Source: Lepidodermella squamata (lineage: Eukaryota > Animalia > Gastrotricha). Taken from it: 64,000 bases of DNA. Made by a program: the position numbers and the translations under genes. Shown in pieces: positions 21,693 through 39,100 of the stretch (positions within the stretch are counted from its first letter, which is position 1; each line of letters begins with the position of its first letter). Under the pieces are notes generated by a model. That model was not told where the DNA came from, searched no databases, and saw nothing but the letters and a program-made list of their open reading frames with translations. The DNA is taken from assembly GCA_047495785.1 (NCBI GenBank), contig JBLDXI010000017.1, positions 310,001 through 374,000 on the forward strand. Reading direction: 5' to 3'.

Positions 21693-24600
21693 TCAACCCC
21701 AAGTGATTAATGCCATGGTTAATCTGCAAAGTTCTGCTAAGATCTCCCAAGATTCAAGACACTCGAAAATCTGGAACTGGAAAAGTCTATAAGGTACCAG
21801 TCCTGGTACCTTATAGACTTTTCCAGTTTCGGATTGCTTTTCTGCCAGGAATATAGCAACATCGACGTGGCCGTGTCCGAAGGGAATCCATAGCGGAGTT
21901 TCTCCTGTGTTTCCAGCCGTTGAAACTGTTTCGGGTGCCTTTTCTGCCAGGAATATAGCAACATCGGTGTGGCCGTTTCCGGTGGCAATTAAGAGCGGAG
22001 TTGTTCCTCTGTTATTAGCCAACGAAACTGTTTCGGGTGCCTTTTTTGCCAGGAATATAACAACATCGATATGGCCGCTTCCGGCGGCAATAAAGAGCGG
22101 AGTTTCTCCTGTGTTTCTTGCCGTTGAAACTGTTTCGGGTGCCTTTTCTGCCAGGAAACTAACAACATCGATGTGGCCGTTTTGAGCGGCAATAAAGAGC
22201 GGAGTTTCTCCTGTGTTTCTAGCCGTTGAAACTGTTTCGGGTGCCTTTTCTGCCAGGAAACGAACAACATCGATATGGCCGTTTTGGGCGGCAACCCATA
22301 GCGGAGTTGCTCCATTGTCTTCAGCCAACGAAACTGTTTCGGGTGCCTTGTCTGCCAGGAAACGAACAACATCGACGTGGCCGTTTAGTGCGGCAATCAA
22401 GAGCGGAGTTGCTCCATTGTATTCAGCCAACGAAACTGTTTCGGGTGCCTTGTCTGCCAGGAAACAAACAACATCGACGTGGCCGTTTTGAGCGGCAATC
22501 CATAGCGGAGTTGCTCCTCTGTCATTAGCCAACGAAACTGTTTCGGGTGCCTTTTTTGCCAGGAATATAACAACATCGATATGGCCGCTTCCGGTGGCAA
22601 TTAAGAGCGGAGTTTCTCCTCTGTTATTAGCCAACGAAACTGTTTCGGGTGCCTTTTTTGCCAGGAATATAACAACATCGATATGGCCGCCTCCGGCGGC
22701 AATAAAGAGCGGAGTTTCTCCTGTGTTTCTAGCCGTTGAAACTGTTTCGGGTGCCTTTTCTGCTAGGAAACTAACAACATCGATGTGGCCGTTTTGAGCG
22801 GCAATCCATAGCGGAGTGCTGTCGTCAATATTTACCGTCGAAGCTATCAGTGGCGATCTCTCGTATAAGAAAGCTACCATTGAAGTATCGTTCTGCAGCG
22901 CAGCTATTTCTGCAGCTTTTGTTGCCTCAGCCGGGTTGAATGTGGTATTGGAATTTGGCACGTCTCTCATTAAAACTGATTGGATGAAATGTGATGTTTC
23001 ATTGCTGCTCATCAGTAAATTTAATTGTTTTCTTGCCTTATATTTGTAGTAGTGCCCGTAAAAGAATTTGGTTACTTTCCGTCTTTCGTGCTGTAGCATA
23101 TATATTGGATCTTCGTCCCAAACTTGCATCAGAAACGCCAGATCGCTGTGTTCTGCCAAGCGATTGATGTATTCCCGATTTGCATGCTTCAACTTCAATA
23201 AAATCCATGCAGTCATTCGATATGAATGATGCGTCCCATAATTCTTATACCAATCGTTTTCTCTTCGACGGAAATTGTCTTCCCACTCCAAGCCGTAAAG
23301 GAAATGGATAAAAGACTTGCCCTCGCGTTCACTCGTAGATGTGCAAATTTCCAACAGCGCTTCGTTGCTCAAACTGTCTAGAATATCACGTAGCAATTGG
23401 CGATGAACTGCTTTATGTTTTTGACCAGCTTCGCCCTTGAAAAACTCAAAAAGCATCATCTCGGCCTTCGAAGCATTCCGCCTCTGAAGAACAAACAGCC
23501 GCACTTCATCATAAAGATCCGCGCCATGCGAACCTGTTATCTCAAATTCCCTCGCTGCTCGTCGGAAACCAGCCTCCCAAAGCAACTGATGCACGAAAGA
23601 GAGTTCGCGCTCTTGATCAGCAGTTCTGACAAGTGCCTGCTGATTAAAGACCTCGAGAACGTCTCTGACTTTTGTCAGTTTAGGTGCCAGTTGACGCCAC
23701 AGCATCGTTAAATATTCGACGGAAATCGGAAAGTTTGGCCTGAATAGCAAGTAAGCATAGAAGCAATGTCTATAATCGTCTCCTAGTCGGTCGAGAGAAA
23801 ACTGCAACAGGCTGTCAACGGTCTTCTCTTTAAACCGGCGATCACCGCCGTTGATGGACATATCGAAGTCGTTGGTCTTTTGCTTGATCAGATCTTCGTA
23901 TTTCTCGTCCCAATCATAATTCCCGAAACGGAAGCGACTAGCAACAAGAGACATGATGAGAGGCAAACCCTGGCATATTTTTGCGAGGTTAGCCAACTTT
24001 TTCTCGGCATCTACCTTGAATTTCTTCTTCAATTCAATTTCTTGGTCCAGATATCGTTCTATGTCTTTATTTTCAAGGCTATTAATCTCCACCAATTTAT
24101 AGATTTGCCCCTGTTGATTATTCAAAATCGGAGATGGGTCCCGTGTTATAATACAGCAAGACATCTCAGATTGCTCGTGCACGAAGTATCGGAGCAATTC
24201 AACGTTGAACATGTCATCGAGGACGACTAAAACGCGACGGCTGTATTTATCTCGGAAATACTCGCTTATATGAGATAATTCCGATCCCGAAAACTCTGCA
24301 GAGGCCTTCTTTGCAAGGGCTAAAAGACTTTCGCGGAAATCCTTCTTGTCAGATTCATCGAATGTTGTTCCTTGCCATTTGAAACACTCAAGCCATAATA
24401 CGACAGTTGAATTTTGTAGCCCTGTTATCATTGTCTCGCTACTCAGCAGTTTGGCCATTAACACTGATTTACCAACACCTGCCTCGCCAGATACAACCAG
24501 TACACCTAAAATAATATTTCGAACGGTTTTGAGAGACGAGCACTCCAAAAATGATAATGGAACAGCCAAGGACGCAATATTAAATGAGGACATGAATGAG

Positions 24601-27600
24601 TAATGAATAATTTTGATTTAGTCAGAAGGTTTCGAATAGTTAATGGGAATCCATGCTGGATTGCGTCGCCAGTTAACTTTCTTAACTAAGATCTCTGATG
24701 AGTCTCCCGGCCGAGACGAAACGTATACATCAGACTAGCCATATTGATTTTTTGAGACTACAAAAACAGAGTTGTTGGCTTTTTTCAAACTCCTTCTTTC
24801 CAAATTTATTTATTTATTTTCCTATATGCAGTGTCAATAAAGTCCAAATACTCATTGCTGGGCCGATCGTGGTGGGGTTAGTGGCTGGGAAACTGTGCTA
24901 ATCAAGTAAAAGAAGCGCGGGCTGCGAAGCGTCATACAATCAAATCGACAATCCCAGCATAAATAGTTGGGTTTTGACTTCGCAAATCGGGACAAACATG
25001 ACCATGAAGTCCTCTGAGCTCCACATTCAAAGATGCATAGTTAGAACGCATGCGAGTAAGCTCACAAAACGTCACGCTAATCCCTCACCGTTACCGAGAG
25101 TCAACGTTGCTTCAAGTCAAAAAGTTGAAAAATAAAAAACCTCTCGACGGTGCCCGGTGCCCCAAATTAGCATAGAAATTTCAAACCCTAAACTGCGCAC
25201 TTAGTCAGCCTTTTCTACTACGTTTCGATTGATTTTTCTTTAAGCCACCTGATGTCATCCTGTGCCTTCGTTGACAACACAAGGCACGGATGAAGGGTGA
25301 ACGGATGAACACTGTCTAACTAAGATATGGTCGCCAACACTCGCTGTTATGAGCCATTTGCCCGGGTAGGCGGGTCGAATGGTAGATTTAAAATACAGCC
25401 AATACTAGCTACTAGCTAGAGCTTAAAGGCTTTAATCATAGATGAGAATAAAATTATCATCATTTCATTCCTTCACTCCTTTTTCTATGCCTTAATGTTT
25501 AATGGTTCGCTGTAGCTATGAAAATTCCGTCTCTTCAGTGTTCTTTAATAAATTTATTTGTGTGCGTTATATGGCATATTTTGAGTTTTTAGCCTCTTTA
25601 GCACTTTTTGAAGTATTGTAAGATTTAGAATCTTTCATGAAAACAACTCACCAATAGCTGGTTTATTGCAGATGTTGACCAAGTGTTTTATCATTTCCGC
25701 TTCGAGTTCTTCCCGCTCGAAATAGTTAGAGATGCTGGGACGTAGGCGCGAGGCGTAAAATCGATTCGAAACAACGGGTATTTTGAGAAGTAGACGGATT
25801 CGCGTGCATATTTCATTCGCATCGCTCTCAAAGTGCATTGGGTGAGTTCGCAGGACTGTCTGAGTGATATTTCTGGAATCAACGAGTTGGTCGGAATTGT
25901 CTCCTAGCTTCACAAGAAGGATTTTCCTTCCCTTGGAGATAACAAAGTCGACTTCTTTTGCGTAAAGTGAAGCTTCCAGATAAGGTTCACTTAGAAAGGC
26001 AACAATGATATCAGCCCAGTCAACTTCCTAATATTGTATACATTAAAACGAGTCGAATTTAGAAGAGACTGAAAACTTGCCTTGATCATCCGCTGATCTA
26101 TTAAACTAAGATTTTCATGTTTATTGAAGAACACATCGAAGTCTGACTGCTTGCTGAGATAACCATCAACGATGTTGCGAACATCGTCTTTTCTGGAGCT
26201 CCATGAGTGGCTGATCAAAACGCGAATCTTTTTGTCGGCAGGTGTTGTCAGGCCGGGTTCTAAACTCGGTTGCTGTGAAATAGGCACAAAAGTCAAGCAT
26301 ATTGCATATTCTGTAAAGGACAAAAGTGAGAAATGAGACACCCTATGGGATGCCTTGTGTTAAAGCAAAGCGAACAAAATATTATATGATACCCCAAGAA
26401 GAGAGATCCTCTGAATAGGGGTTTTCGGAGCGTTTGGAATAATATTTGCCATTGTGCGAATATTCTTCCCTTTTTGTTTCAAGTCTCAATTGTTTGTTAA
26501 TAGTATTATTAACAAGACCTGTGATGGAGCATTCTCCCCTCGGATGGTTGTAGCGCTTGAATTCACGTTCTTAATAAAAGAGAAAAGAAAATTAAAAAGG
26601 GACATAATCGCGAGCGCCGGTTTCTAAGCAAAACGTGGATCAGATGAATAAGACTTGAATCATCGATAATTCATTTTGAAGTTAAAGTTACAAAATTTTA
26701 ACATAGAGTTAGACCGAATTGCAGAACCTAAAAAAGGTCAGGTCTCGTTCATAAGGCAGGGATTGTGGGTTGATTGATAAAATTAAAAGGCAGATCCTTG
26801 TAAATCGGTAATTATGAATATTGAATTGAATAAACTTGCCTTCGGAGGCGCTTGAGAATTGCTGAAACCACTTTCACCGAATTGCATTTTAGAGAGAGAA
26901 ATTTGATTGTTGTGTTCAATATTCGGTAAAATGAGCGATTCGCCAGAGGCCTCCAAATTTGTCGTAAAAAAAGGGCTGGTTACTAAATCTTTCACCGCTG
27001 CCCTTAATTTACAGTCCGTTTTCAGCATCGACTGGATGAACCTGAGGAATACATCTGAATAATGACAGTCGTCGTCGAATTTTGGTGGATCGTCGTCGAC
27101 TATATCACGACTGTCCTTCAGATGTGAGATGGCGCTTTCATAGGATGTCGAATGTCCACGAGAAAGTACTTACTTTTTTACGACGATTGGCCAACTCGAG
27201 CAAAGTGACACCAAGGGACCACACGTCGCCGGCTTCTGAGTAATCGTCGTTGTCAACGCAATCCTGATTACTTTTCGCCCGAAGTTTTCGGTCGCGATTT
27301 TTCCGAACTTCAGGCGCCTCATACATTGGTGTCCCAACTGCTAGCGTCATGCTAGTCAGTTGACTGCAAACAAAGAGCGTAATCCTCAAGTAAAGTTTGA
27401 AAATAAAATAGATTACTCATCGTAGATTTTAACTGATCCGAAGTCCCCCAATATCACAGTTTTTATGTCACTGCACAGAAAAATATTTTTGGGCTTTATA
27501 TCGCGATGAAGGGCTTTGCGGGCGTGTATTGCTGCAACGGCTGTTACAAGCTGGCGAGCCCAGCTGCGGAGCAAGTTTTCCGAAATCGGCTCTTGAATTT

Positions 27601-28825
27601 TGTTAACGTAATATGCTTCCAAATCGCCACCGGGATAGAAATCCATCACAAGGTAGTACATCAAGTCTCCAAGTTCCCATTTCCTCTCACTTTCCTCTGT
27701 TTCATCCAGTTGTAGCAATTTTTCTGTAGTAGAAAGATAATCATATTATGCAATCAGCTGCTAAGAAGTTCAAGCGCGCGTAATATTATTACCTTCAAAT
27801 GAGCCATGCGCTCTAACGATGTTAGGATGGCTCAACGTGAGAAGCTTCTCATGCTAGCAAAGGCATATAGGTACAGTCATTTATGGGAAACAGTAAGGTG
27901 AAGCTACCTCTTCGCGGCTCCTTTTCACTAGTTGCTCGGCCCTTGATCGATCCGCGCCATATTTTCGGGAGACTGCGCTAAGATTGACTTTTTTAATGGC
28001 GTAATAAGCCATATCCCCTTTCACTTGGCACCGATAAACAGATGCGAATTTGAGAAGTAGACGGATTCGCGTGCATATTTCATTCGCATCGCTCTCAAAG
28101 TGCATTGGGTGAGTTCGCAGGACTGTCTGAGTGATATTTCTGGAATCAACGAGTTGGTCGGAATTGTCTCCTAGCTTCACAAGAAGGATTTTCCTTCCCT
28201 TGGAGATAACAAAGTCGACTTCTTTTGCGTAAAGTGAAGCTTCCAGATAAGGTTCACTTAGAAAGGCAACAATGATATCAGCCCAGTCAACTTCCTAATA
28301 TTGTATACATTAAAACGAGTCGAATTTAGAAGAGACTGAAAACTTGCCTTGATCATCCGCTGATCTATTAAACTAAGATTTTCATGTTTATTGAAGAACA
28401 CATCGAAGTCTGACTGCTTGCTGAGATAACCATCAACGATGTTGCGAACATCGTCTTTTCTGGAGCTCCATGAGTGGCTGATCAAAACGCGAATCTTTTT
28501 GTCGGCAGGTGTTGTCAGGCCGGGTTCTAAACTCGGTTGCTGTGAAATAGGCACAAAAGTCAAGCATATTGCATATTCTGTAAAGGACAAAAGTGAGAAA
28601 TGAGACACCCTATGGGATGCCTTGTGTTAAAGCAAAGCGAACAAGTTGCTCGGCCCTTGATCGATCCGCGCCATATTTTCGGGAGACTGCGCTAAGATTG
28701 ACTTTTTTAATGGCGTAATAAGCCATATCCCCTTTCACTTGGCACCGATAAACAGATGCGAATGCTCCCTCCCCCAAGTGTTTAAAGTCATCAAATTGTT
28801 CTATCGATGAAAACCTTGCGGCCAT
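21693..28825 (-). CDS. NLR-like STAND protein: (Ser/Thr kinase)-TIR-NB-ARC-ankyrin repeats. Kinase exons about 28825-26840, TIR exons 26272-26081 and 26027-25652, NB-ARC/ANK exon 24505-21693.
   Basis: Kinase motifs: LGEGAFASV, AIKK, HPNIV, HRDIKPKN, DFG, GTPMYEAPE, DVWSLG. TIR motifs: RVLISHSW, DIIVAFLSEPYLEASLYAKEVDF, KILLVKL. NB-ARC motifs: YFERE, GEAGVGKS, VLVVLDD, IITRD, CQGLPL, VHQ. The TIR-to-NB-ARC join is a clean phase-1 GT-AG intron. The kinase-to-TIR join is inferred from a phase-0 GC-AG intron at 26839-26273. Confidence 0.8.
21830..22817 (-). repeat. Ten tandem 102-bp (34-aa) ankyrin repeats with high internal DNA conservation
   Basis: Consensus TPLxIAxxxGHxDVVxFLAxKAPETVSxAxxxGx. 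GCGGAGT recurs every 102 bp (22811, 22709, 22607, ...). Confidence 0.97.
24686..24738 (+). ncRNA. Type I hammerhead ribozyme motif (minimal, Penelope/retrozyme style) with one stem III mismatch
   Basis: TCT-CTGATGA-GTCTC(CCGGCC)GAGAC-GAA-ACGTATACAT-C-AGA. This gives the core boxes, a 5-bp stem II, a near-palindromic stem III and a TCT/AGA stem I. Confidence 0.65.
28049..28644. repeat. 596-bp copy of 25782-26377 (TIR exons) inserted into kinase exon 1, flanked by a 120-bp direct duplication (27930-28049 = 28644-28763)
   Basis: The copies look identical by eye at constant offsets of 2267 bp and 714 bp. ORFs 25991-26341 and 28258-28608 are identical. Confidence 0.93.
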
Positions 28826-33100: not shown

Positions 33101-36100
33101 ATGACCCCGACAAACCTGATTTCGCTTGTGCTAGCCTGCTCGGTCTTCTTCCATTTGTCGATAGCAGTCGATGAGCAGGCGACCACCGTCACATTCCACA
33201 ACGCTGACCCAACAATTAGCGATATAACAATGACTTTGTATAAAGCGTTTTATGATGGCTTCACGCCCGGCCAACCGCCGGCGAAACCCTGGCCGCTGCC
33301 CATACCTTACGCATTCAACAACAAAACCTGGAATACCGGCTCAGCCGGCGATGCAGATATTTGTGAGTTTATCTGACTGCTTTCTGCTTTTCATCTCGAA
33401 TAATTTGAATCATTTTATGATAAATTGATAGCTGAGCATGATAAAGACGTTGCAAAGCAAGCCATAGCTCTACTCGAATCAGTAACCTGCTTGCGGTTCG
33501 AGGAAAGACCGTCTATCGAATTGAACACGCCAAACTCGATTCTTTTCTTTGGATACGGGTGAGTTATTTCATTTCAATTTTTCTTAATTCGGAATCATTC
33601 GTGATCTAATTCTAGAGACGGCGAAGGATTTCATGGCGTTGATTATCCGCAAAAATTCATCGGATTCAAGCATTCCGACAGCTCTTTCGATTCCAGCATG
33701 GGGGTTAATTTTAGTTGAAACACTTCATTGAAAAAAAAATTAAAGAATTTTGGCTCAGGTACAATTTGTGATTAGAAAAATTGGCTACGTCTTAGGACTA
33801 ACGTATGAACTCAGGCGGCCGGACCGCGATCAATATCTCACTGCCCTCCCTGACTCCGGAAACAGGTTTGCTTTTATTTCGCAGAAGAGAAGATTTCTTC
33901 GACTATTTCTCGTAAGCTACCCAATTAATTCTGGGCAAACGTATTACAACGCGACTCCGTTTGATTACGAGTCACTTTTCAACCCCGTTATGGATAAGGA
34001 TGATATCCAAGGATTAACTGAGAGATATCCGCATGACCTGCGATACATACAAAGCTTGGGGCAGTCTTCTTACATATCACTGTTCGACATGGTGAAGTTG
34101 AACACGCTTTATAATTGTTTTAGTGAGTTAAAACTATTTTCCTTTAAAAATCAAAGAATGGCGTTAAACTTTCATTTCAGGTTCAGATCCTTGCAAGAAC
34201 TCAAAAATCACATGCCAAAACGGTGGTTACCTGAATCCGAGCGTGAACTGTACGAAATGCTTCTGTCCGGTTGGCCTGGGTGGCGATTTCTGCGAAGCCC
34301 CGTACCCAACAGATACAGCGAACGGCTGCGGCGGCGAAATCTTTGTGAAACCCTGCACTGTCGTCAACATATCAACTCCTGGGGATGGCATAGCGAATTC
34401 TAAGAGCTGTTCGTGGCGTGTCACAACGGTTCGAAAGTTATTCATTCTTGCTATTCCGATGTATTATTTCTCTTTCAGGGTGACAAGAGTGGATTGGTGT
34501 TCGCTTTTCCAAGTTCCATGGTTTCCCTAGAAGCTTTTAGTTGGAAATTTGATTCATGTGAATATTCGCTAAATTAATTCTTTTCAGAATGGTTCAATTG
34601 TATGAACTTTATAATGATGAGAGGATTGGGACCCGAGAGCAGAGTTCCAGGATTTATGTAAACCTCGTTTGGAAATAAGGGCTCTTATCCGCTAATTTCT
34701 TCCTCTATCGCATTTATAGGTTCTGCCAATACGCTCCTAGGCAAGGTCGTATCTTCGTGACAAACCAAAATCAAGCTTTGGTCTACTCAAGCATACCGTA
34801 CCAAGAGGACGACGGTGTCACTCTTACGGTCTACGCAACATGCCCTGGTGTGAAAGCAACCGAGTTGACCCGAGAATGCCGAATCACACCGAACGCGAAT
34901 GATTATGAAGGATTTCTCTTGACCAAGACCTCAACGGGCATAACATGCTCCTACTGGTCCAAAACTACCTGGAGATATTATGGTTTTCCTAGGGGCGATG
35001 TCAATGCCTCGGGAAATGCGTGCCGTGGTTCCTCATTACCTCCTTATTTGGTATGCTGGCATTTTGAATATGGCTATAGCGCATGCGAGAATGACGACAG
35101 AATAAAAAGCTGCAGTAAGTTATTATAAATTATTACCACTGTCGCCCTTGAACATGAATCTAAGACCTAAGTCAAATGTTTTCGTGCACATCCTTGACTT
35201 GCTGCCCAGATTTGCGCATAACCATGTAACGCATAAACCACGCGCGACGCCGGCGTAATACGCTATTACCGTTAGTCACAAGTCGAATGTCGCCCATGCC
35301 AAAATAGTACTAATTGCATGTGTACGACAGCGTATTCATCTTGGAGTAATAGTACATGGAGTGAGGACTCCCTTTATCTGCGCGCACTATCAGTCAGCAA
35401 AGGCTGAGTGGCCCAGCGTGGTGCCCGCTCTAACACGTAACTCAAGTGCGCACGTGACCAACTACGGCGCCCAATCCGCTTCAAGCGTCCCTGGTGATCG
35501 CTAAGCAGCTCTTACTCTTGGGAAAGACTTAGCAAAATAAAGCCATTTTATTGTTAGTCGGCTAGGATTGTTAATATTATCATCATTATTATCATTATAA
35601 GTGTGAGTGAATGTTGTTAGCGCTATTTACGTTTTTAGTAAGGCAGCGAGGAAGAAATGAATTCGTTTGCAGTATTATTTTTTTTCGAATTGCGCGTATA
35701 GTCATTATTAAGACCAGCTCTCAATTGAATAGTAGTAGGAGAAGCATTATCTCTGTCTAACAAAGTGATTCGTTTAGCGAAAATGTTCTGAATAATTTTA
35801 GCCATAGGCTTAATACTAGCGAGAGAGGGCGAAGACTGAGGATTTTTCTGGTATAAAGAATAAAATAATTTCTCGGCGAATTCGAACTCGAACCAGCAGT
35901 CGCGGTACGGGGCGGAAACTGCTTCACGAACAACAGCCAGAGCTTCAGCGTTGGGTTTCACTAGGCCGCCGCGGCTCAGAAAGCCATCGGGTTGACTGTC
36001 GTCGGGTTTCAGCTTCAACTGCCGGGTGATGTAGCCGGCGACGTGGGCATTCGACCTCTCATCGATGTTCAAATTGGCTGGCAAAGCGACGCGAAACAAC

Positions 36101-39100
36101 GGGTTGGAATGAGTCGCGAGTTTTGTTGTTTTCTTCAATCGCCGCGCAGTTGACAATTTCAATGACTTGATCCGATGGCGCTTCACGTTAGCACCCTTCG
36201 AAAAACCGAAATTCGACCCAACATATCGAAGAACAGATAGTTTTTGAAGGAGTCGAGTCATTGTCGGGTGACGAGCACCGCCGAGACCGCACCTGATCTG
36301 ACTGAACAACTGTTCCAAGGGGTCGCTGTTAAAACGCGCAGTAAGGACGTATTCGACACCCTCGCCAAGCAGCTTCTCGACCAGTCGAATGATGGCTTCG
36401 GTCGAAGTTAAAATGCCGTCGAAGGTCTGCTCAGAAATTTTGTTGTTGCTATTAGCTTGAGAAGACTGCCGTTCTCGAAACCAGGCGCAAAACTCGCGAA
36501 GCCAGACCAGCCGTTCGTCGTCGACGCTGGTGAAGGGAGCCAGGTTGTCATTTCGCTGGCCAAGATAGTTGTAGCAGCTGCTGACGTTCAAACAGTCGAA
36601 CCAGCGGTTGAACTTGCTGATTACCGGCGCCATGGCCTGAGCGTGCTTGTAAAGAGGATGACCAGGCTTGAACTCAGCCAGCAACGCCCGCGCCATGGTT
36701 TCGCTGAAAATTTCGGCGGCGAAGGCAACCCGCATTTTCAGCGAGTTGTTGCTCAGAATCTTGACGAGGTTCGTCGGGTTGAATTTCTTGTACATTCGAA
36801 GTACACGTTGTTTATCGATGTTCAAAACTTCGATCAGCACTTCCCAGAGAAACCGAGCGCCGTCTTCATCGAGTTCCCATGGCCTCTTGCTCAAGTTGTT
36901 GCGCAAAGTCTAAATGAAAAATAATTTAAAAATTAATTTCAGTTTTCAGAAATTTTCTAAATTTTTCACGATTTTTTTTTAATTTTTAATTTTACAATTT
37001 ATTTATTTTATTTTAAATTAAATGCAACAAACCTTCAAGAGATGAGGGACGTCGAAAATAACTTCAATCGCTTCACCTCGAGCATTCATGATTGGATTCG
37101 TCTCCAAGTAGTTGCGAAGCTCACGATTTTTGCCATCGCCGTCAAACGTCAGCCACATTCCATGACAGTCATGCTCGGCGAGTTGCGAGATGATTTCGTC
37201 GATACACGACGCGATCTCGGACGATTCAACCGCCTTGTAGACAGGGAAGGATCCGACGCAAAGGGCGAGAGGCGATTCGACGAAGCGAAGCATGACACAG
37301 AGTGCTTTGACCGCCGGTTCATCTGGGTCATCAACAGCTCGGCCGTTCACCATGCCGCCAGCCAGAACCTCTGTCTTACCATTGACGGCAACTTCGTCGA
37401 TTTCGACGCCGAAGAAACGAAATGGGCGCGGATTTTCTTTAATTTCCTCAATAAGGGCAGTCATGGTTGATTGATGCAACCCAGCCGTATATTCGTACGG
37501 AACCGCCTGTTGAAGCGTGGTTCGATGAGGCAACGGCAAAAGGCCAGCTTCCCGAACGAACGAGTAGCCACAAGGGCTCTTGAGGTACAGCGATAGAGAC
37601 ATCGTCATGTAGAGGGGCGAATATCTAAAAAAAATTAAGTAAGCATGTAAAAATTCCATGATAAATTCTAAAAAAATATTTTGAAAATTTTAGAAAATCC
37701 AAGAAAGAGCTAAGAATTTTGGGAATTTTTAAGAAGTTTTAAAATTTACCTCCGGCCTTGGTCCTTCTTCTTGCGGTGGTCGGCCGCCTCAGCGAGAAGC
37801 TGGTTGAACTGCTCTTTCGTGAAGTGCAGAAATTTGAAGTTTTCTTCATCAGCTGCCGTCGATTCAGAGGCACCCAGCTGCATAGCCGATTCGATGACCG
37901 GAATTCGACGTTGAAGTTCAGCCTTTTCTTCGCGGCACTTTCGAAGTTGAGCTTCAGTTAGAGCCAGAGCTTCGGCTTGACGTTTGCTTTCAGCCTCGGC
38001 CTTTTCTAAGGCTTTGTTGAACTTTCGCCGTAAATAAGAGTTATTTTCAATGAGTTGTTGATTTGTTGCTTTTGAAGATTCGGGCGTATCAAATTTGGTG
38101 ATTTTTATTTGAGTAGTCGGCGTTGCGGGCTTGTTAGGTACTTGCTGGCAGACCGGATCTGTCCCTACACCAAGGTGAACTACTGGCGGGCGAGCGTCGA
38201 CGGCTACATGATGAAGTGACGGCTGAACTTGAACAGCAACCGATGCCGTGGGCAACAAATCGGTTTGAGTAGACGAGTCGATCATGACCGGCGGCGGCCC
38301 TCGGCCACATTCGCAAGGCGGCGGTTCTTCGACGTCCAACTTGCGTTTTTTGCTGAGGCTGGCAGCTTTAACTTTATTAGCATTGCCTGCCTTACCAGAG
38401 CCCTTATTTCGACCCATATTGCATAGCAATAACGTATTTTAGAATAGTTAGTGTTAAGCGAGAGTAGAGAAGTGTTTAATCCCACTCAAAATAACGCTCA
38501 AACCAGATGCGCGCGCACCTGGTCAAGTCGCACATCAGGTCGATTTATTTCACACAAACACGCCGCCTTCTTGAATATAAGTGTTATGTATTATATATGT
38601 ACTCATAGATCACGTCAAGAGCTATCGACTGGTGTAAGCCACTTTGAATTCCAAGATAGCCTCTCGAAATAAATGGTACCACAAAATCATGGAAAAAAAC
38701 CATGTTTTGATTAATAAGTCAGGAACGGGATATCATATTGAAATAATTTTTTGATGTACCGATGCGCCATATCGTCAGTTACTTACCTGTAAAATTTCAT
38801 CTAATTATCATTTACCGTCTTCAAAAAAACGGTACCAACGTTTTTGGCTTAGCGAGACACAGTCGCGCGAGGCGAGGTTTTGCACACGTGCGCGAGGCGA
38901 GCGGCGCGCCCCCCGTTGTGCGCGCGATACGATCTCTATAATAGGCGAGTCCTCACTCCATGTCTATTCCTCCAAGGTATTCATAGGAGGATTGAAAACA
39001 GGTGAATGACGCCATGTCATGAGAGTCAGCATGTCATCGATGTTGTGTGTCAATGTCGTGCGCACAACTGCACGCGACATCGACTGGCACACCCTAATCC

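Follow-up and report, generated by a model that had tools for sequence, protein, structure and literature searches.

A TIR-NB-ARC-ankyrin receptor gene and its kinase neighbour in the gastrotrich Lepidodermella squamata

We analysed a stretch of 64,000 nucleotides (nt), below called the window, from the gastrotrich Lepidodermella squamata (assembly GCA_047495785.1, contig JBLDXI010000017.1, positions 310,001 to 374,000). Four modules, a protein kinase, a TIR domain, an NB-ARC domain and an ankyrin array, are collinear on the minus strand between positions 28825 and 21693. A preliminary description of the locus had taken them for one immune receptor of the effector-STAND-repeat type. Our analysis draws the boundary elsewhere. 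The TIR, NB-ARC and ankyrin parts make up an intact gene, belonging to an animal family of TIR-NB-ARC-ankyrin receptors that is lineage-specific. The kinase belongs to a separate, hugely expanded family of NEK-like Ser/Thr kinases, and this copy has lost the ankyrin exon of its relatives. The locus as a whole probably comprises an intact receptor gene, translated from a short first exon of its own, and a neighbouring kinase gene that is now disrupted.

The TIR-NB-ARC-ankyrin gene and its family

The receptor gene has three coding exons (26272-26081, 26027-25652 and 24505-21693) and a candidate 5' exon. Its features, in window coordinates and in the order of transcription, are as follows.

26393-26452, minus strand: candidate private first exon, ATG and 19 codons; donor GGG/GTATCA in phase 0, 120-nt intron to 26272
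26081-26272, minus strand: TIR exon 1, 64 codons, ..KIRVLISHSW..
26028-26080, minus strand: GC-AG intron inside the TIR domain, 53 nt; spliced junction in run X2 (loose contig end at 26029)
25652-26027, minus strand: TIR exon 2, 125 codons and 1 base; ..AKE.. with the catalytic-position glutamate, then the linker to ..NKPAIG
24506-25651, minus strand: phase-1 intron, 1146 nt; donor G/GTGAGT at 25652/25651, acceptor ttttag at 24506/24505
23880-24509, minus strand: NB-ARC nucleotide-binding domain and ARC1; Walker A GEAGVGKS, Walker B VLVVLDD, GLPL; Pfam match
22839-23879, minus strand: ARC2 and winged-helix region; VHQ at the MHD position, then a helical linker conserved among paralogues
21819-22838, minus strand: ankyrin array, ten 34-residue repeats with a 102-nt period; Pfam Ank_2, E 2.1e-65
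21693-21818, minus strand: C-terminal tail and stop codon, open reading frame

The NB-ARC and ankyrin parts lie in a single open frame of 966 codons (24593-21693). The Pfam NB-ARC model (PF00931) scores 51.9 bits on it (cut-off 23.5; E 8.4e-14) and aligns over model positions 18-224 of 248, and the motifs GEAGVGKS, VLVVLDD and GLPLIM are invariant across seven paralogues. The only solved structure matched by the family profile is the NB-ARC domain of tomato NRC1 (E 1.1e-5), with the GLPL motif, the winged helix and the VHD/VHQ motif aligned. An AlphaFold2 model from an alignment of seven sequences, made as a check of the fold (nucleotide-binding domain, HD1 and winged-helix domain), was unusable, its mean pLDDT being 40. 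The ankyrin units share an invariant scaffold and vary at positions 3, 4, 5, 7, 11, 15, 16, 19, 23 and 27. No families of leucine-rich repeats (LRR) were found among the Pfam matches of the locus; the repeats are ankyrin, and the protein differs in this from a canonical NLR, which joins a nucleotide-binding oligomerisation (NOD) module to LRRs.

The TIR domain is split by an intron. Single exons were compared with Pfam, and the spliced form by profile-profile alignment. Neither exon of the window taken alone is matched by Pfam TIR_2 (PF13676), even at E up to 10. However, the earlier assignment of this domain holds on other grounds. Firstly, hhalign aligns the spliced profile of six paralogues with the Pfam TIR_2 domains of the genome over 130 columns that include both exons (probability 97.2%, E 3.6e-11). 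Secondly, in a genome-wide search TIR_2 scores 30.3 bits (cut-off 28) in the closest paralogue, L013, on the corresponding exon (C42:4556825-4557046), and TIR exon 2 of the window aligns with that exon. Thirdly, the neighbours of TIR exon 2 found with a protein language model are TIR_2 clusters (scores 0.90 and 0.88). In the alignment of profiles, the glutamate of ..AKE.. is aligned on the glutamate of the C-x-x-E motif in the TIR_2 domains of this genome, an agreement of position only, and is nearly invariant in nine paralogues. We accept the domain, judged by its sequence, as a divergent one of the TIR_2 type that keeps the catalytic-position residue. A profile of TIR exon 2 compared with the sequences of solved structures gave chance matches only, with no solved TIR domain among them, and was set aside. 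Neither the NB-ARC part nor TIR exon 2 had a match in word-indexed protein searches.

The NB-ARC part recurs at 80 or more places in the 121-Mb genome, about ten of them at 62-70% identity. Both TIR exons lie directly upstream in nine of these ten close paralogues, and a TIR-like exon 2 of this kind is found at only 12 places genome-wide. By comparison of coordinates, a Pfam TIR_2 match stands immediately upstream and on the same strand at 19 NB-ARC loci. The exon structure is conserved as well: the three coding exons and both introns recur in about ten paralogues. The intron inside the TIR domain, in phase 0 and with an unusual GCAAGT donor, is common to the window and to the paralogous loci L014, L015, L017 and L018. 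The TIR and NB-ARC exons join in frame across the phase-1 intron (..PAIG/VLVVSGEAGVGKS), as proposed earlier, and this intron, between ..KPAxG and the P-loop exon, has the same position in nine of the nine paralogous loci where both flanks could be located. In most paralogues it is about 45-55 nt long, and in L021 and L022 it ranges from several hundred to about 1,500 nt. In the window it is enlarged by two dispersed short repeats (about 24609-24750 and about 24997-25155).

The ratio of non-synonymous to synonymous substitution rates (dN/dS) of the TIR and NB-ARC parts against six paralogues is 0.15-0.21. The TIR-NB-ARC-ankyrin gene is real and constrained, and it evolves under purifying selection. 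For this part of the locus, where a genuine gene is conserved among paralogues and maintained by selection, the effector-STAND-repeat reading is valid.

Two public sequencing runs, X1 and X2, were used in contig form. Neither is on record as RNA, and X2 is guessed to be RNA. It holds 24 pieces at least 99% identical to the window. One of its contigs leaves the genomic sequence at 26029, and the next nine letters are the exact end of TIR exon 1; therefore this contig carries the spliced GC-AG junction of the TIR domain. In other X2 contigs two kinase introns are removed, one of 54 nt (joint 27853/27908) and one of 53 nt upstream of kinase exon 4. These contigs come from paralogues, because they have 7-12 mismatches to the window. 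As to expression, the splicing of the TIR intron is seen in X2, whereas the joint 26840/26272, which would link the kinase to the TIR domain, is not among the X1 and X2 joints listed.

The start of the receptor is less firmly placed. In the paralogues, TIR exon 1 is entered in several ways: from a short private coding exon (L013, L017, L018), from a SAM-like exon (L019, L021, L022), or at an internal ATG (L014, L015). The short 5' exons of L013, L017 and L018 have an analogue in the candidate first exon of the window (26452-26393), and the receptor is probably translated from this candidate.

In an exhaustive profile search, only 23 of 1.84 billion cluster representatives matched at E of 0.001 or below. 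The best is a 1535-residue NB-ARC-ankyrin protein (P0024, E 6.8e-31) on an environmental eukaryotic metagenome scaffold from ENA (L042), and all nine of the best matches examined come from metagenome contigs. One outside match combines TIR_2 with NB-ARC. No Pkinase domain was found in the 20 of the 23 relatives that were scanned with Pfam. No TIR-NB-ARC-ankyrin family of animals was found in the literature searched.

Several further observations concern this family. The SAM-like exon (..FTANELDE..LLTKDEIK..) just upstream of TIR exon 1 in L019, L021 and L022 was called by eye, Pfam being silent. L014 and L015 begin inside the TIR exon with M-G-K-P-L-S, which resembles an N-myristoylation signal. 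In L042 an open frame of 103 residues just upstream of the NB-ARC-ankyrin gene is a possible TIR exon. GC-AG introns with a donor GCAAG(T/C) are repeatedly found at two homologous positions of the receptor and kinase families (26080 and 26839 in the window; L014, L015, L017, L018, L021 and L022); GC donors may be unusually frequent in this genome. The two repeats in the phase-1 intron, about 140 and about 155 nt long, have dozens of copies at 72-94% identity and look like elements of the miniature inverted-repeat (MITE) or short interspersed (SINE) type. The X1 depth is 755-1086 in the bins spanning 24551-24852, within this intron.

The kinase gene and the insertion in its first exon

The features upstream of the receptor exons are the following.

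28763-28825, minus strand: kinase exon 1, first 21 codons; ATG at 28825-28823, ends in the Gly-rich loop (..LGEGA); Pfam Pkinase model positions 3-42
28641-28762, minus strand: kinase exon 1, segment B, copy 1; recurs at 28048-27927, 122/123 identical
28610-28612, minus strand: premature stop TAG, ending the kinase frame after 71 codons as assembled
28049-28644, minus strand: inserted copy of the TIR region, 596 bp, 100% identical to 26377-25782
27908-28048, minus strand: remainder of kinase exon 1, segment B copy 2 followed by ..KRSREE; donor GT at 27907
27793-27853, minus strand: kinase exon 2, ..HPNIV..
27417-27723, minus strand: kinase exon 3, HRDIKPKN and GDFG; Pfam Pkinase E 1.5e-16
27174-27363, minus strand: kinase exon 4, activation loop ..GTPMYEAPE.., DVWSLG
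26840-27115, minus strand: kinase exon 5, ending in ..QAPPK at the phase-0 donor AAG/GCAAGT
26273-26839, minus strand: interval between kinase exon 5 and TIR exon 1, 567 nt; GC-AG intron or intergenic spacer

The kinase motifs are all present (Gly loop, AIK, HRDIKPKN, GDFG, YEAPE), and the Pkinase pieces cover Pfam model positions 3-195 on three short frames. The exons are separated by four GT-AG introns of 54, 69, 53 and 58 nt. If the donor of exon 5 is unused, the frame continues to a stop at 26783. The label "NEK-like" that the kinase had been given is weakly supported: NEK1 is the top match of exon 3 among solved structures (E 2.1e-11), with MRCK, MELK and others close behind.

The kinase had also been described as complete. 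As assembled it is not, and the reason was overlooked earlier: exon 1 is interrupted by an insertion of 714 bp starting at 28762, and the frame ends at a TAG after 71 codons. An open frame for the kinase domain (PF00069), of 346 codons, is obtained only if the insertion is removed. From the TIR region the insertion has copied an intron tail and the acceptor, followed by TIR exon 1, its 53-nt GC-AG intron and 82 codons from the start of TIR exon 2; the copy ends fused in frame to the kinase sequence ..FASVYRC... An open TIR frame of 116 residues is present twice. A repeat finder gives the flanking repeat as 28763-28641 against 28049-27927 (123 bp, 99%, 122/123); one edge base is common to the flank, so the coding coordinates of segment B begin at 28762 and 28048.

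As assembled, the insertion is a very recent duplication that includes part of the TIR region. Its junctions show at most 1-2 bases of microhomology, and it looks like a template-switch or end-joining event; possibly it is an assembly error. The end of one X1 contig, at 26348, falls within the duplicated block, exactly 30 nt from its left end, which is what a second context, if it exists, would produce. Another (25698-26084) crosses the right end at 25782 unbroken, and no X1 contig matched 28024-28174. The X1 joints 27248/27517 and 27906/28644 were considered as alleles and rejected, as they derive from the paralogous copy L024. A cryptic donor CTT/GTTCGC (28643/28642) by which the insertion might be spliced in frame was likewise rejected, being a poor site with no support.

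The kinase family is large. There are 413 first-look candidates genome-wide, and their usual form is a kinase followed by an ankyrin exon. In the window the 567-nt interval downstream of the kinase (26273-26839) contains no remnant of an ankyrin or SAM exon. One 101-residue exon alone finds 57 places at E below 1e-20; the family forms tandem arrays, for example on contigs C43, C61, C36 and C2.

Only some receptors have a kinase beside them. No kinase was found within 4-5 kb upstream in eight of the ten close receptor paralogues. At L021 and L022 the order is kinase, its own large ankyrin exon, SAM-like receptor exon and then TIR; each of these loci holds two separate genes, a kinase-ankyrin gene and a receptor gene. 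Within its clade the kinase has a dN/dS of 0.43-0.55, and its two sister copies are degenerate. Of the kinase paralogues that look intact, the closest, L023 (G000:C10:716501-726500, about 80% nucleotide identity), retains the GCAAGT terminal donor; downstream of it are 5.6 kb without recognisable coding sequence and then a 161-residue fragment of a receptor-type ankyrin array, 62% identical to that of the window. L024 (G000:C17:219501-229500), about 110 kb away on the same contig, is an older, degenerate copy of the kinase-TIR block, 82-90% identical. Its kinase exon 1 is uninterrupted, 268 bp of the kinase are deleted, the TIR region is only partly present, and the NB-ARC exon is cut down to its first 75 bp.

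One gene or two

The reading that we favour, with reasonable though far from complete confidence, is that of two genes: the intact receptor, starting from its own short first exon, and the disrupted kinase next to it. A receptor with two enzymatic outputs, as first proposed, is not supported in that form, the kinase being absent from most close paralogues of the receptor and its exon 1 being broken in this assembly.

Several observations weigh against two genes. TIR exon 1 has no in-frame ATG ahead of the domain. The candidate first exon has a weak donor (GTATCA) and no sequence similarity to the 5' exons of the paralogues; it and kinase exon 5 are equally good partners for the acceptor at 26272. 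The terminal GC donor after ..QAPPK has the same position and phase as the kinase-to-ankyrin donor in L021, L022, L025 and L027, and the window kinase has no ankyrin exon for this donor to join. The kinase and TIR parts are also adjacent at L024 (dS about 0.2-0.4); therefore their juxtaposition is not brand new. Finally, the read evidence on the insertion is ambiguous, and it could be an allele or an assembly error.

The main alternative is a true four-domain receptor of 1472 residues, in which the last kinase exon is spliced to the TIR domain through a 567-nt GC-AG intron and the insertion is an error or an allele. We consider it, and a functional four-domain protein, unlikely. The proposed junction leads from AAG/GCAAGT (26840/26839) to cacag/CAA (26273/26272) and is in phase 0 on both sides. 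It is possible because the donor is homologous to working kinase-to-ankyrin donors (L021, L022, L025 and L027, in two of which it is also GC), the family conserves the acceptor at 26272, in phase 0, and the phases agree. With the insertion left out, the fused frame is open over all 1472 codons. Moreover, the kinase-TIR block has been duplicated together (L024), and kinases as N-terminal domains of NLRs have been reported in mosses and fungi (PMC7145615, PMC4986451). In such a protein the kinase would be a second output or an integrated sensor or decoy domain.

On the other hand, no read joint listed connects 26840 to 26272. The intron would be 567 nt long, against 53-69 nt for the four other introns of the kinase. 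The kinase frame stops after 71 codons as assembled, and eight of the ten close receptor paralogues have no kinase. The sister kinases L023 and L024 are degenerate, with dN/dS raised to the values given above.

Adjacency as such was rejected as evidence of a functional module: L021 and L022 have the look of a single block duplicated, and a genome with hundreds of kinases and at least 80 receptors should show some adjacency by chance. Should the kinase nevertheless be spliced to the receptor, with the insertion being allelic or erroneous, which we regard as quite improbable, the locus would encode a one-chain animal STAND receptor with a kinase and a predicted catalytic TIR domain. The fusion would then have arisen by loss of the ankyrin exon of the kinase and exon-phase-compatible joining of two neighbouring immune-type genes.

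It is very unlikely that the whole locus is decaying, the start exon of the receptor having been lost when a rearrangement placed the kinase beside it, and neither protein being functional: the missing ATG ahead of the TIR domain, the broken kinase exon 1, the plainly degenerate copies L023 and L024 and the intron swollen by repeats ahead of the NB-ARC exon would fit, but the 966-codon frame and the two TIR exons are undamaged and no motif is missing, the splice sites are all intact, dN/dS against the paralogues is low, X2 holds nearly identical pieces and the spliced TIR junction, and L021 and L022 have long introns at the equivalent position too.

A few results concern the window at large. 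The preliminary description had placed the DNA in a probable nematode, which is not supported: the nematode SL1 leader is absent from the genome, and no nematode is among the listed matches of the sphingolipid desaturase encoded in the window. Its best named matches among those listed reach at most 51% identity and come from several protostome phyla (insects, molluscs, a centipede and a priapulid). A rotifer spliced-leader sequence is also absent from the genome, but the query may be wrong, and this result says little. An Rfam search of the window gave no match. An open frame of 423 residues at 35635-36906 on the minus strand contains transposase domains of the P-element/THAP9 type (TNP-like GTP-binding insertion, RNase H C-terminal).

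Known systems and significance

One close parallel is provided by the plant TIR-NB-ARC-LRR receptors (TNLs). Like them, the receptor has an N-terminal TIR domain with a catalytic-position glutamate, an NB-ARC domain with Walker A, Walker B, GLPL and a histidine at the MHD position, and C-terminal repeats. Unlike them, it has ankyrin repeats in place of LRRs, its TIR_2-type TIR domain diverges too far for Pfam to recognise, and its host is an animal. There is no evidence for common descent of the whole architecture.

Fungal NLR-like proteins combine NB-ARC or NACHT with ANK, TPR or WD repeats (PMC4986451). The resemblance lies in the NOD module followed by ankyrin repeats of very high internal conservation with variable loop and inner-helix positions, and in the swappable N-terminal domains, Pkinase being listed among them (PMC4986451). 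The fungal N-termini are HET, HeLo, PNP_UDP and others, not canonical TIR, whereas the family described here resides in an animal genome and has spliceosomal introns at conserved positions. In mosses, kinase-NLRs have a protein kinase N-terminal to the NB-ARC receptor (PMC7145615), which is the order first proposed for the window. Here, in contrast, the kinase would precede a TIR domain, the link is a candidate only, and kinase exon 1 is interrupted.

Among animals, TIR-NB-ARC has been reported for one amphioxus protein, along with other homologues of Apaf-1 (PMC2246300), NB-ARC genes have expanded in placozoans (PMC6321704), and TIR-NACHT proteins occur in cnidarians (PMC8260672). The pairing of TIR with NB-ARC thus has a precedent in animals; a TIR-NB-ARC-ankyrin family was not found in the literature searched. 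The likeness to the animal NB-ARC expansions consists in the lineage-specific multiplication of STAND NTPases and in shuffled N-terminal domains; the difference is that theirs carry WD40, TPR or no repeats, and the family of the window carries ankyrin. Apaf-1, CED-4 and Dark belong to the same NB-ARC fold family of animals. The outside relative P0003 has a weak match to the winged helix of Dark, and Apaf-1-like proteins are among the distant matches. However, the window receptor has neither CARD nor WD40, and its profile shows only a distant relationship (E 1.9e-7 or weaker).

Plant TNLs, fungal NLRs and bacterial TIR-STAND proteins suggest, by analogy, a possible mechanism for the receptor. 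A ligand would be bound by the ankyrin array, which is homogenised internally and has variable surface positions. The NB-ARC module would then exchange nucleotide and oligomerise. The TIR domains so clustered, with glutamate at the catalytic position, might cleave NAD+ or make a signal of the cyclic ADP-ribose (cADPR) type. TIR domains of rotifers and other animals, as distinct from the window protein, are reported to be catalytic, those of rotifers making cADPR (bioRxiv 10.64898/2026.04.20.719644).

The TIR-NB-ARC-ankyrin family of this animal is undescribed, and this is the solid finding of the analysis. The usual picture of animals is one of NACHT-LRR receptors together with a single NB-ARC protein of the Apaf-1 type. 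The genome of L. squamata instead has dozens of plant-like TIR-NB-ARC genes with an ankyrin sensor built like that of fungal NLRs, and public protein data contain almost no relatives of them. The family is well suited to testing whether TIR catalysis follows the same induced-proximity logic in an animal as in plants and bacteria. The locus also illustrates a possible route to new receptor architectures, in which tandem genes with phase-compatible introns are one deletion away from fusion; the fresh, template-switch-like duplication inside the kinase may be part of such a route. Finally, kinase-ankyrin genes stand beside SAM-TIR-NB-ARC-ankyrin genes at L021 and L022, so that, on the improbable reading of a fusion, the two families might cooperate more generally.

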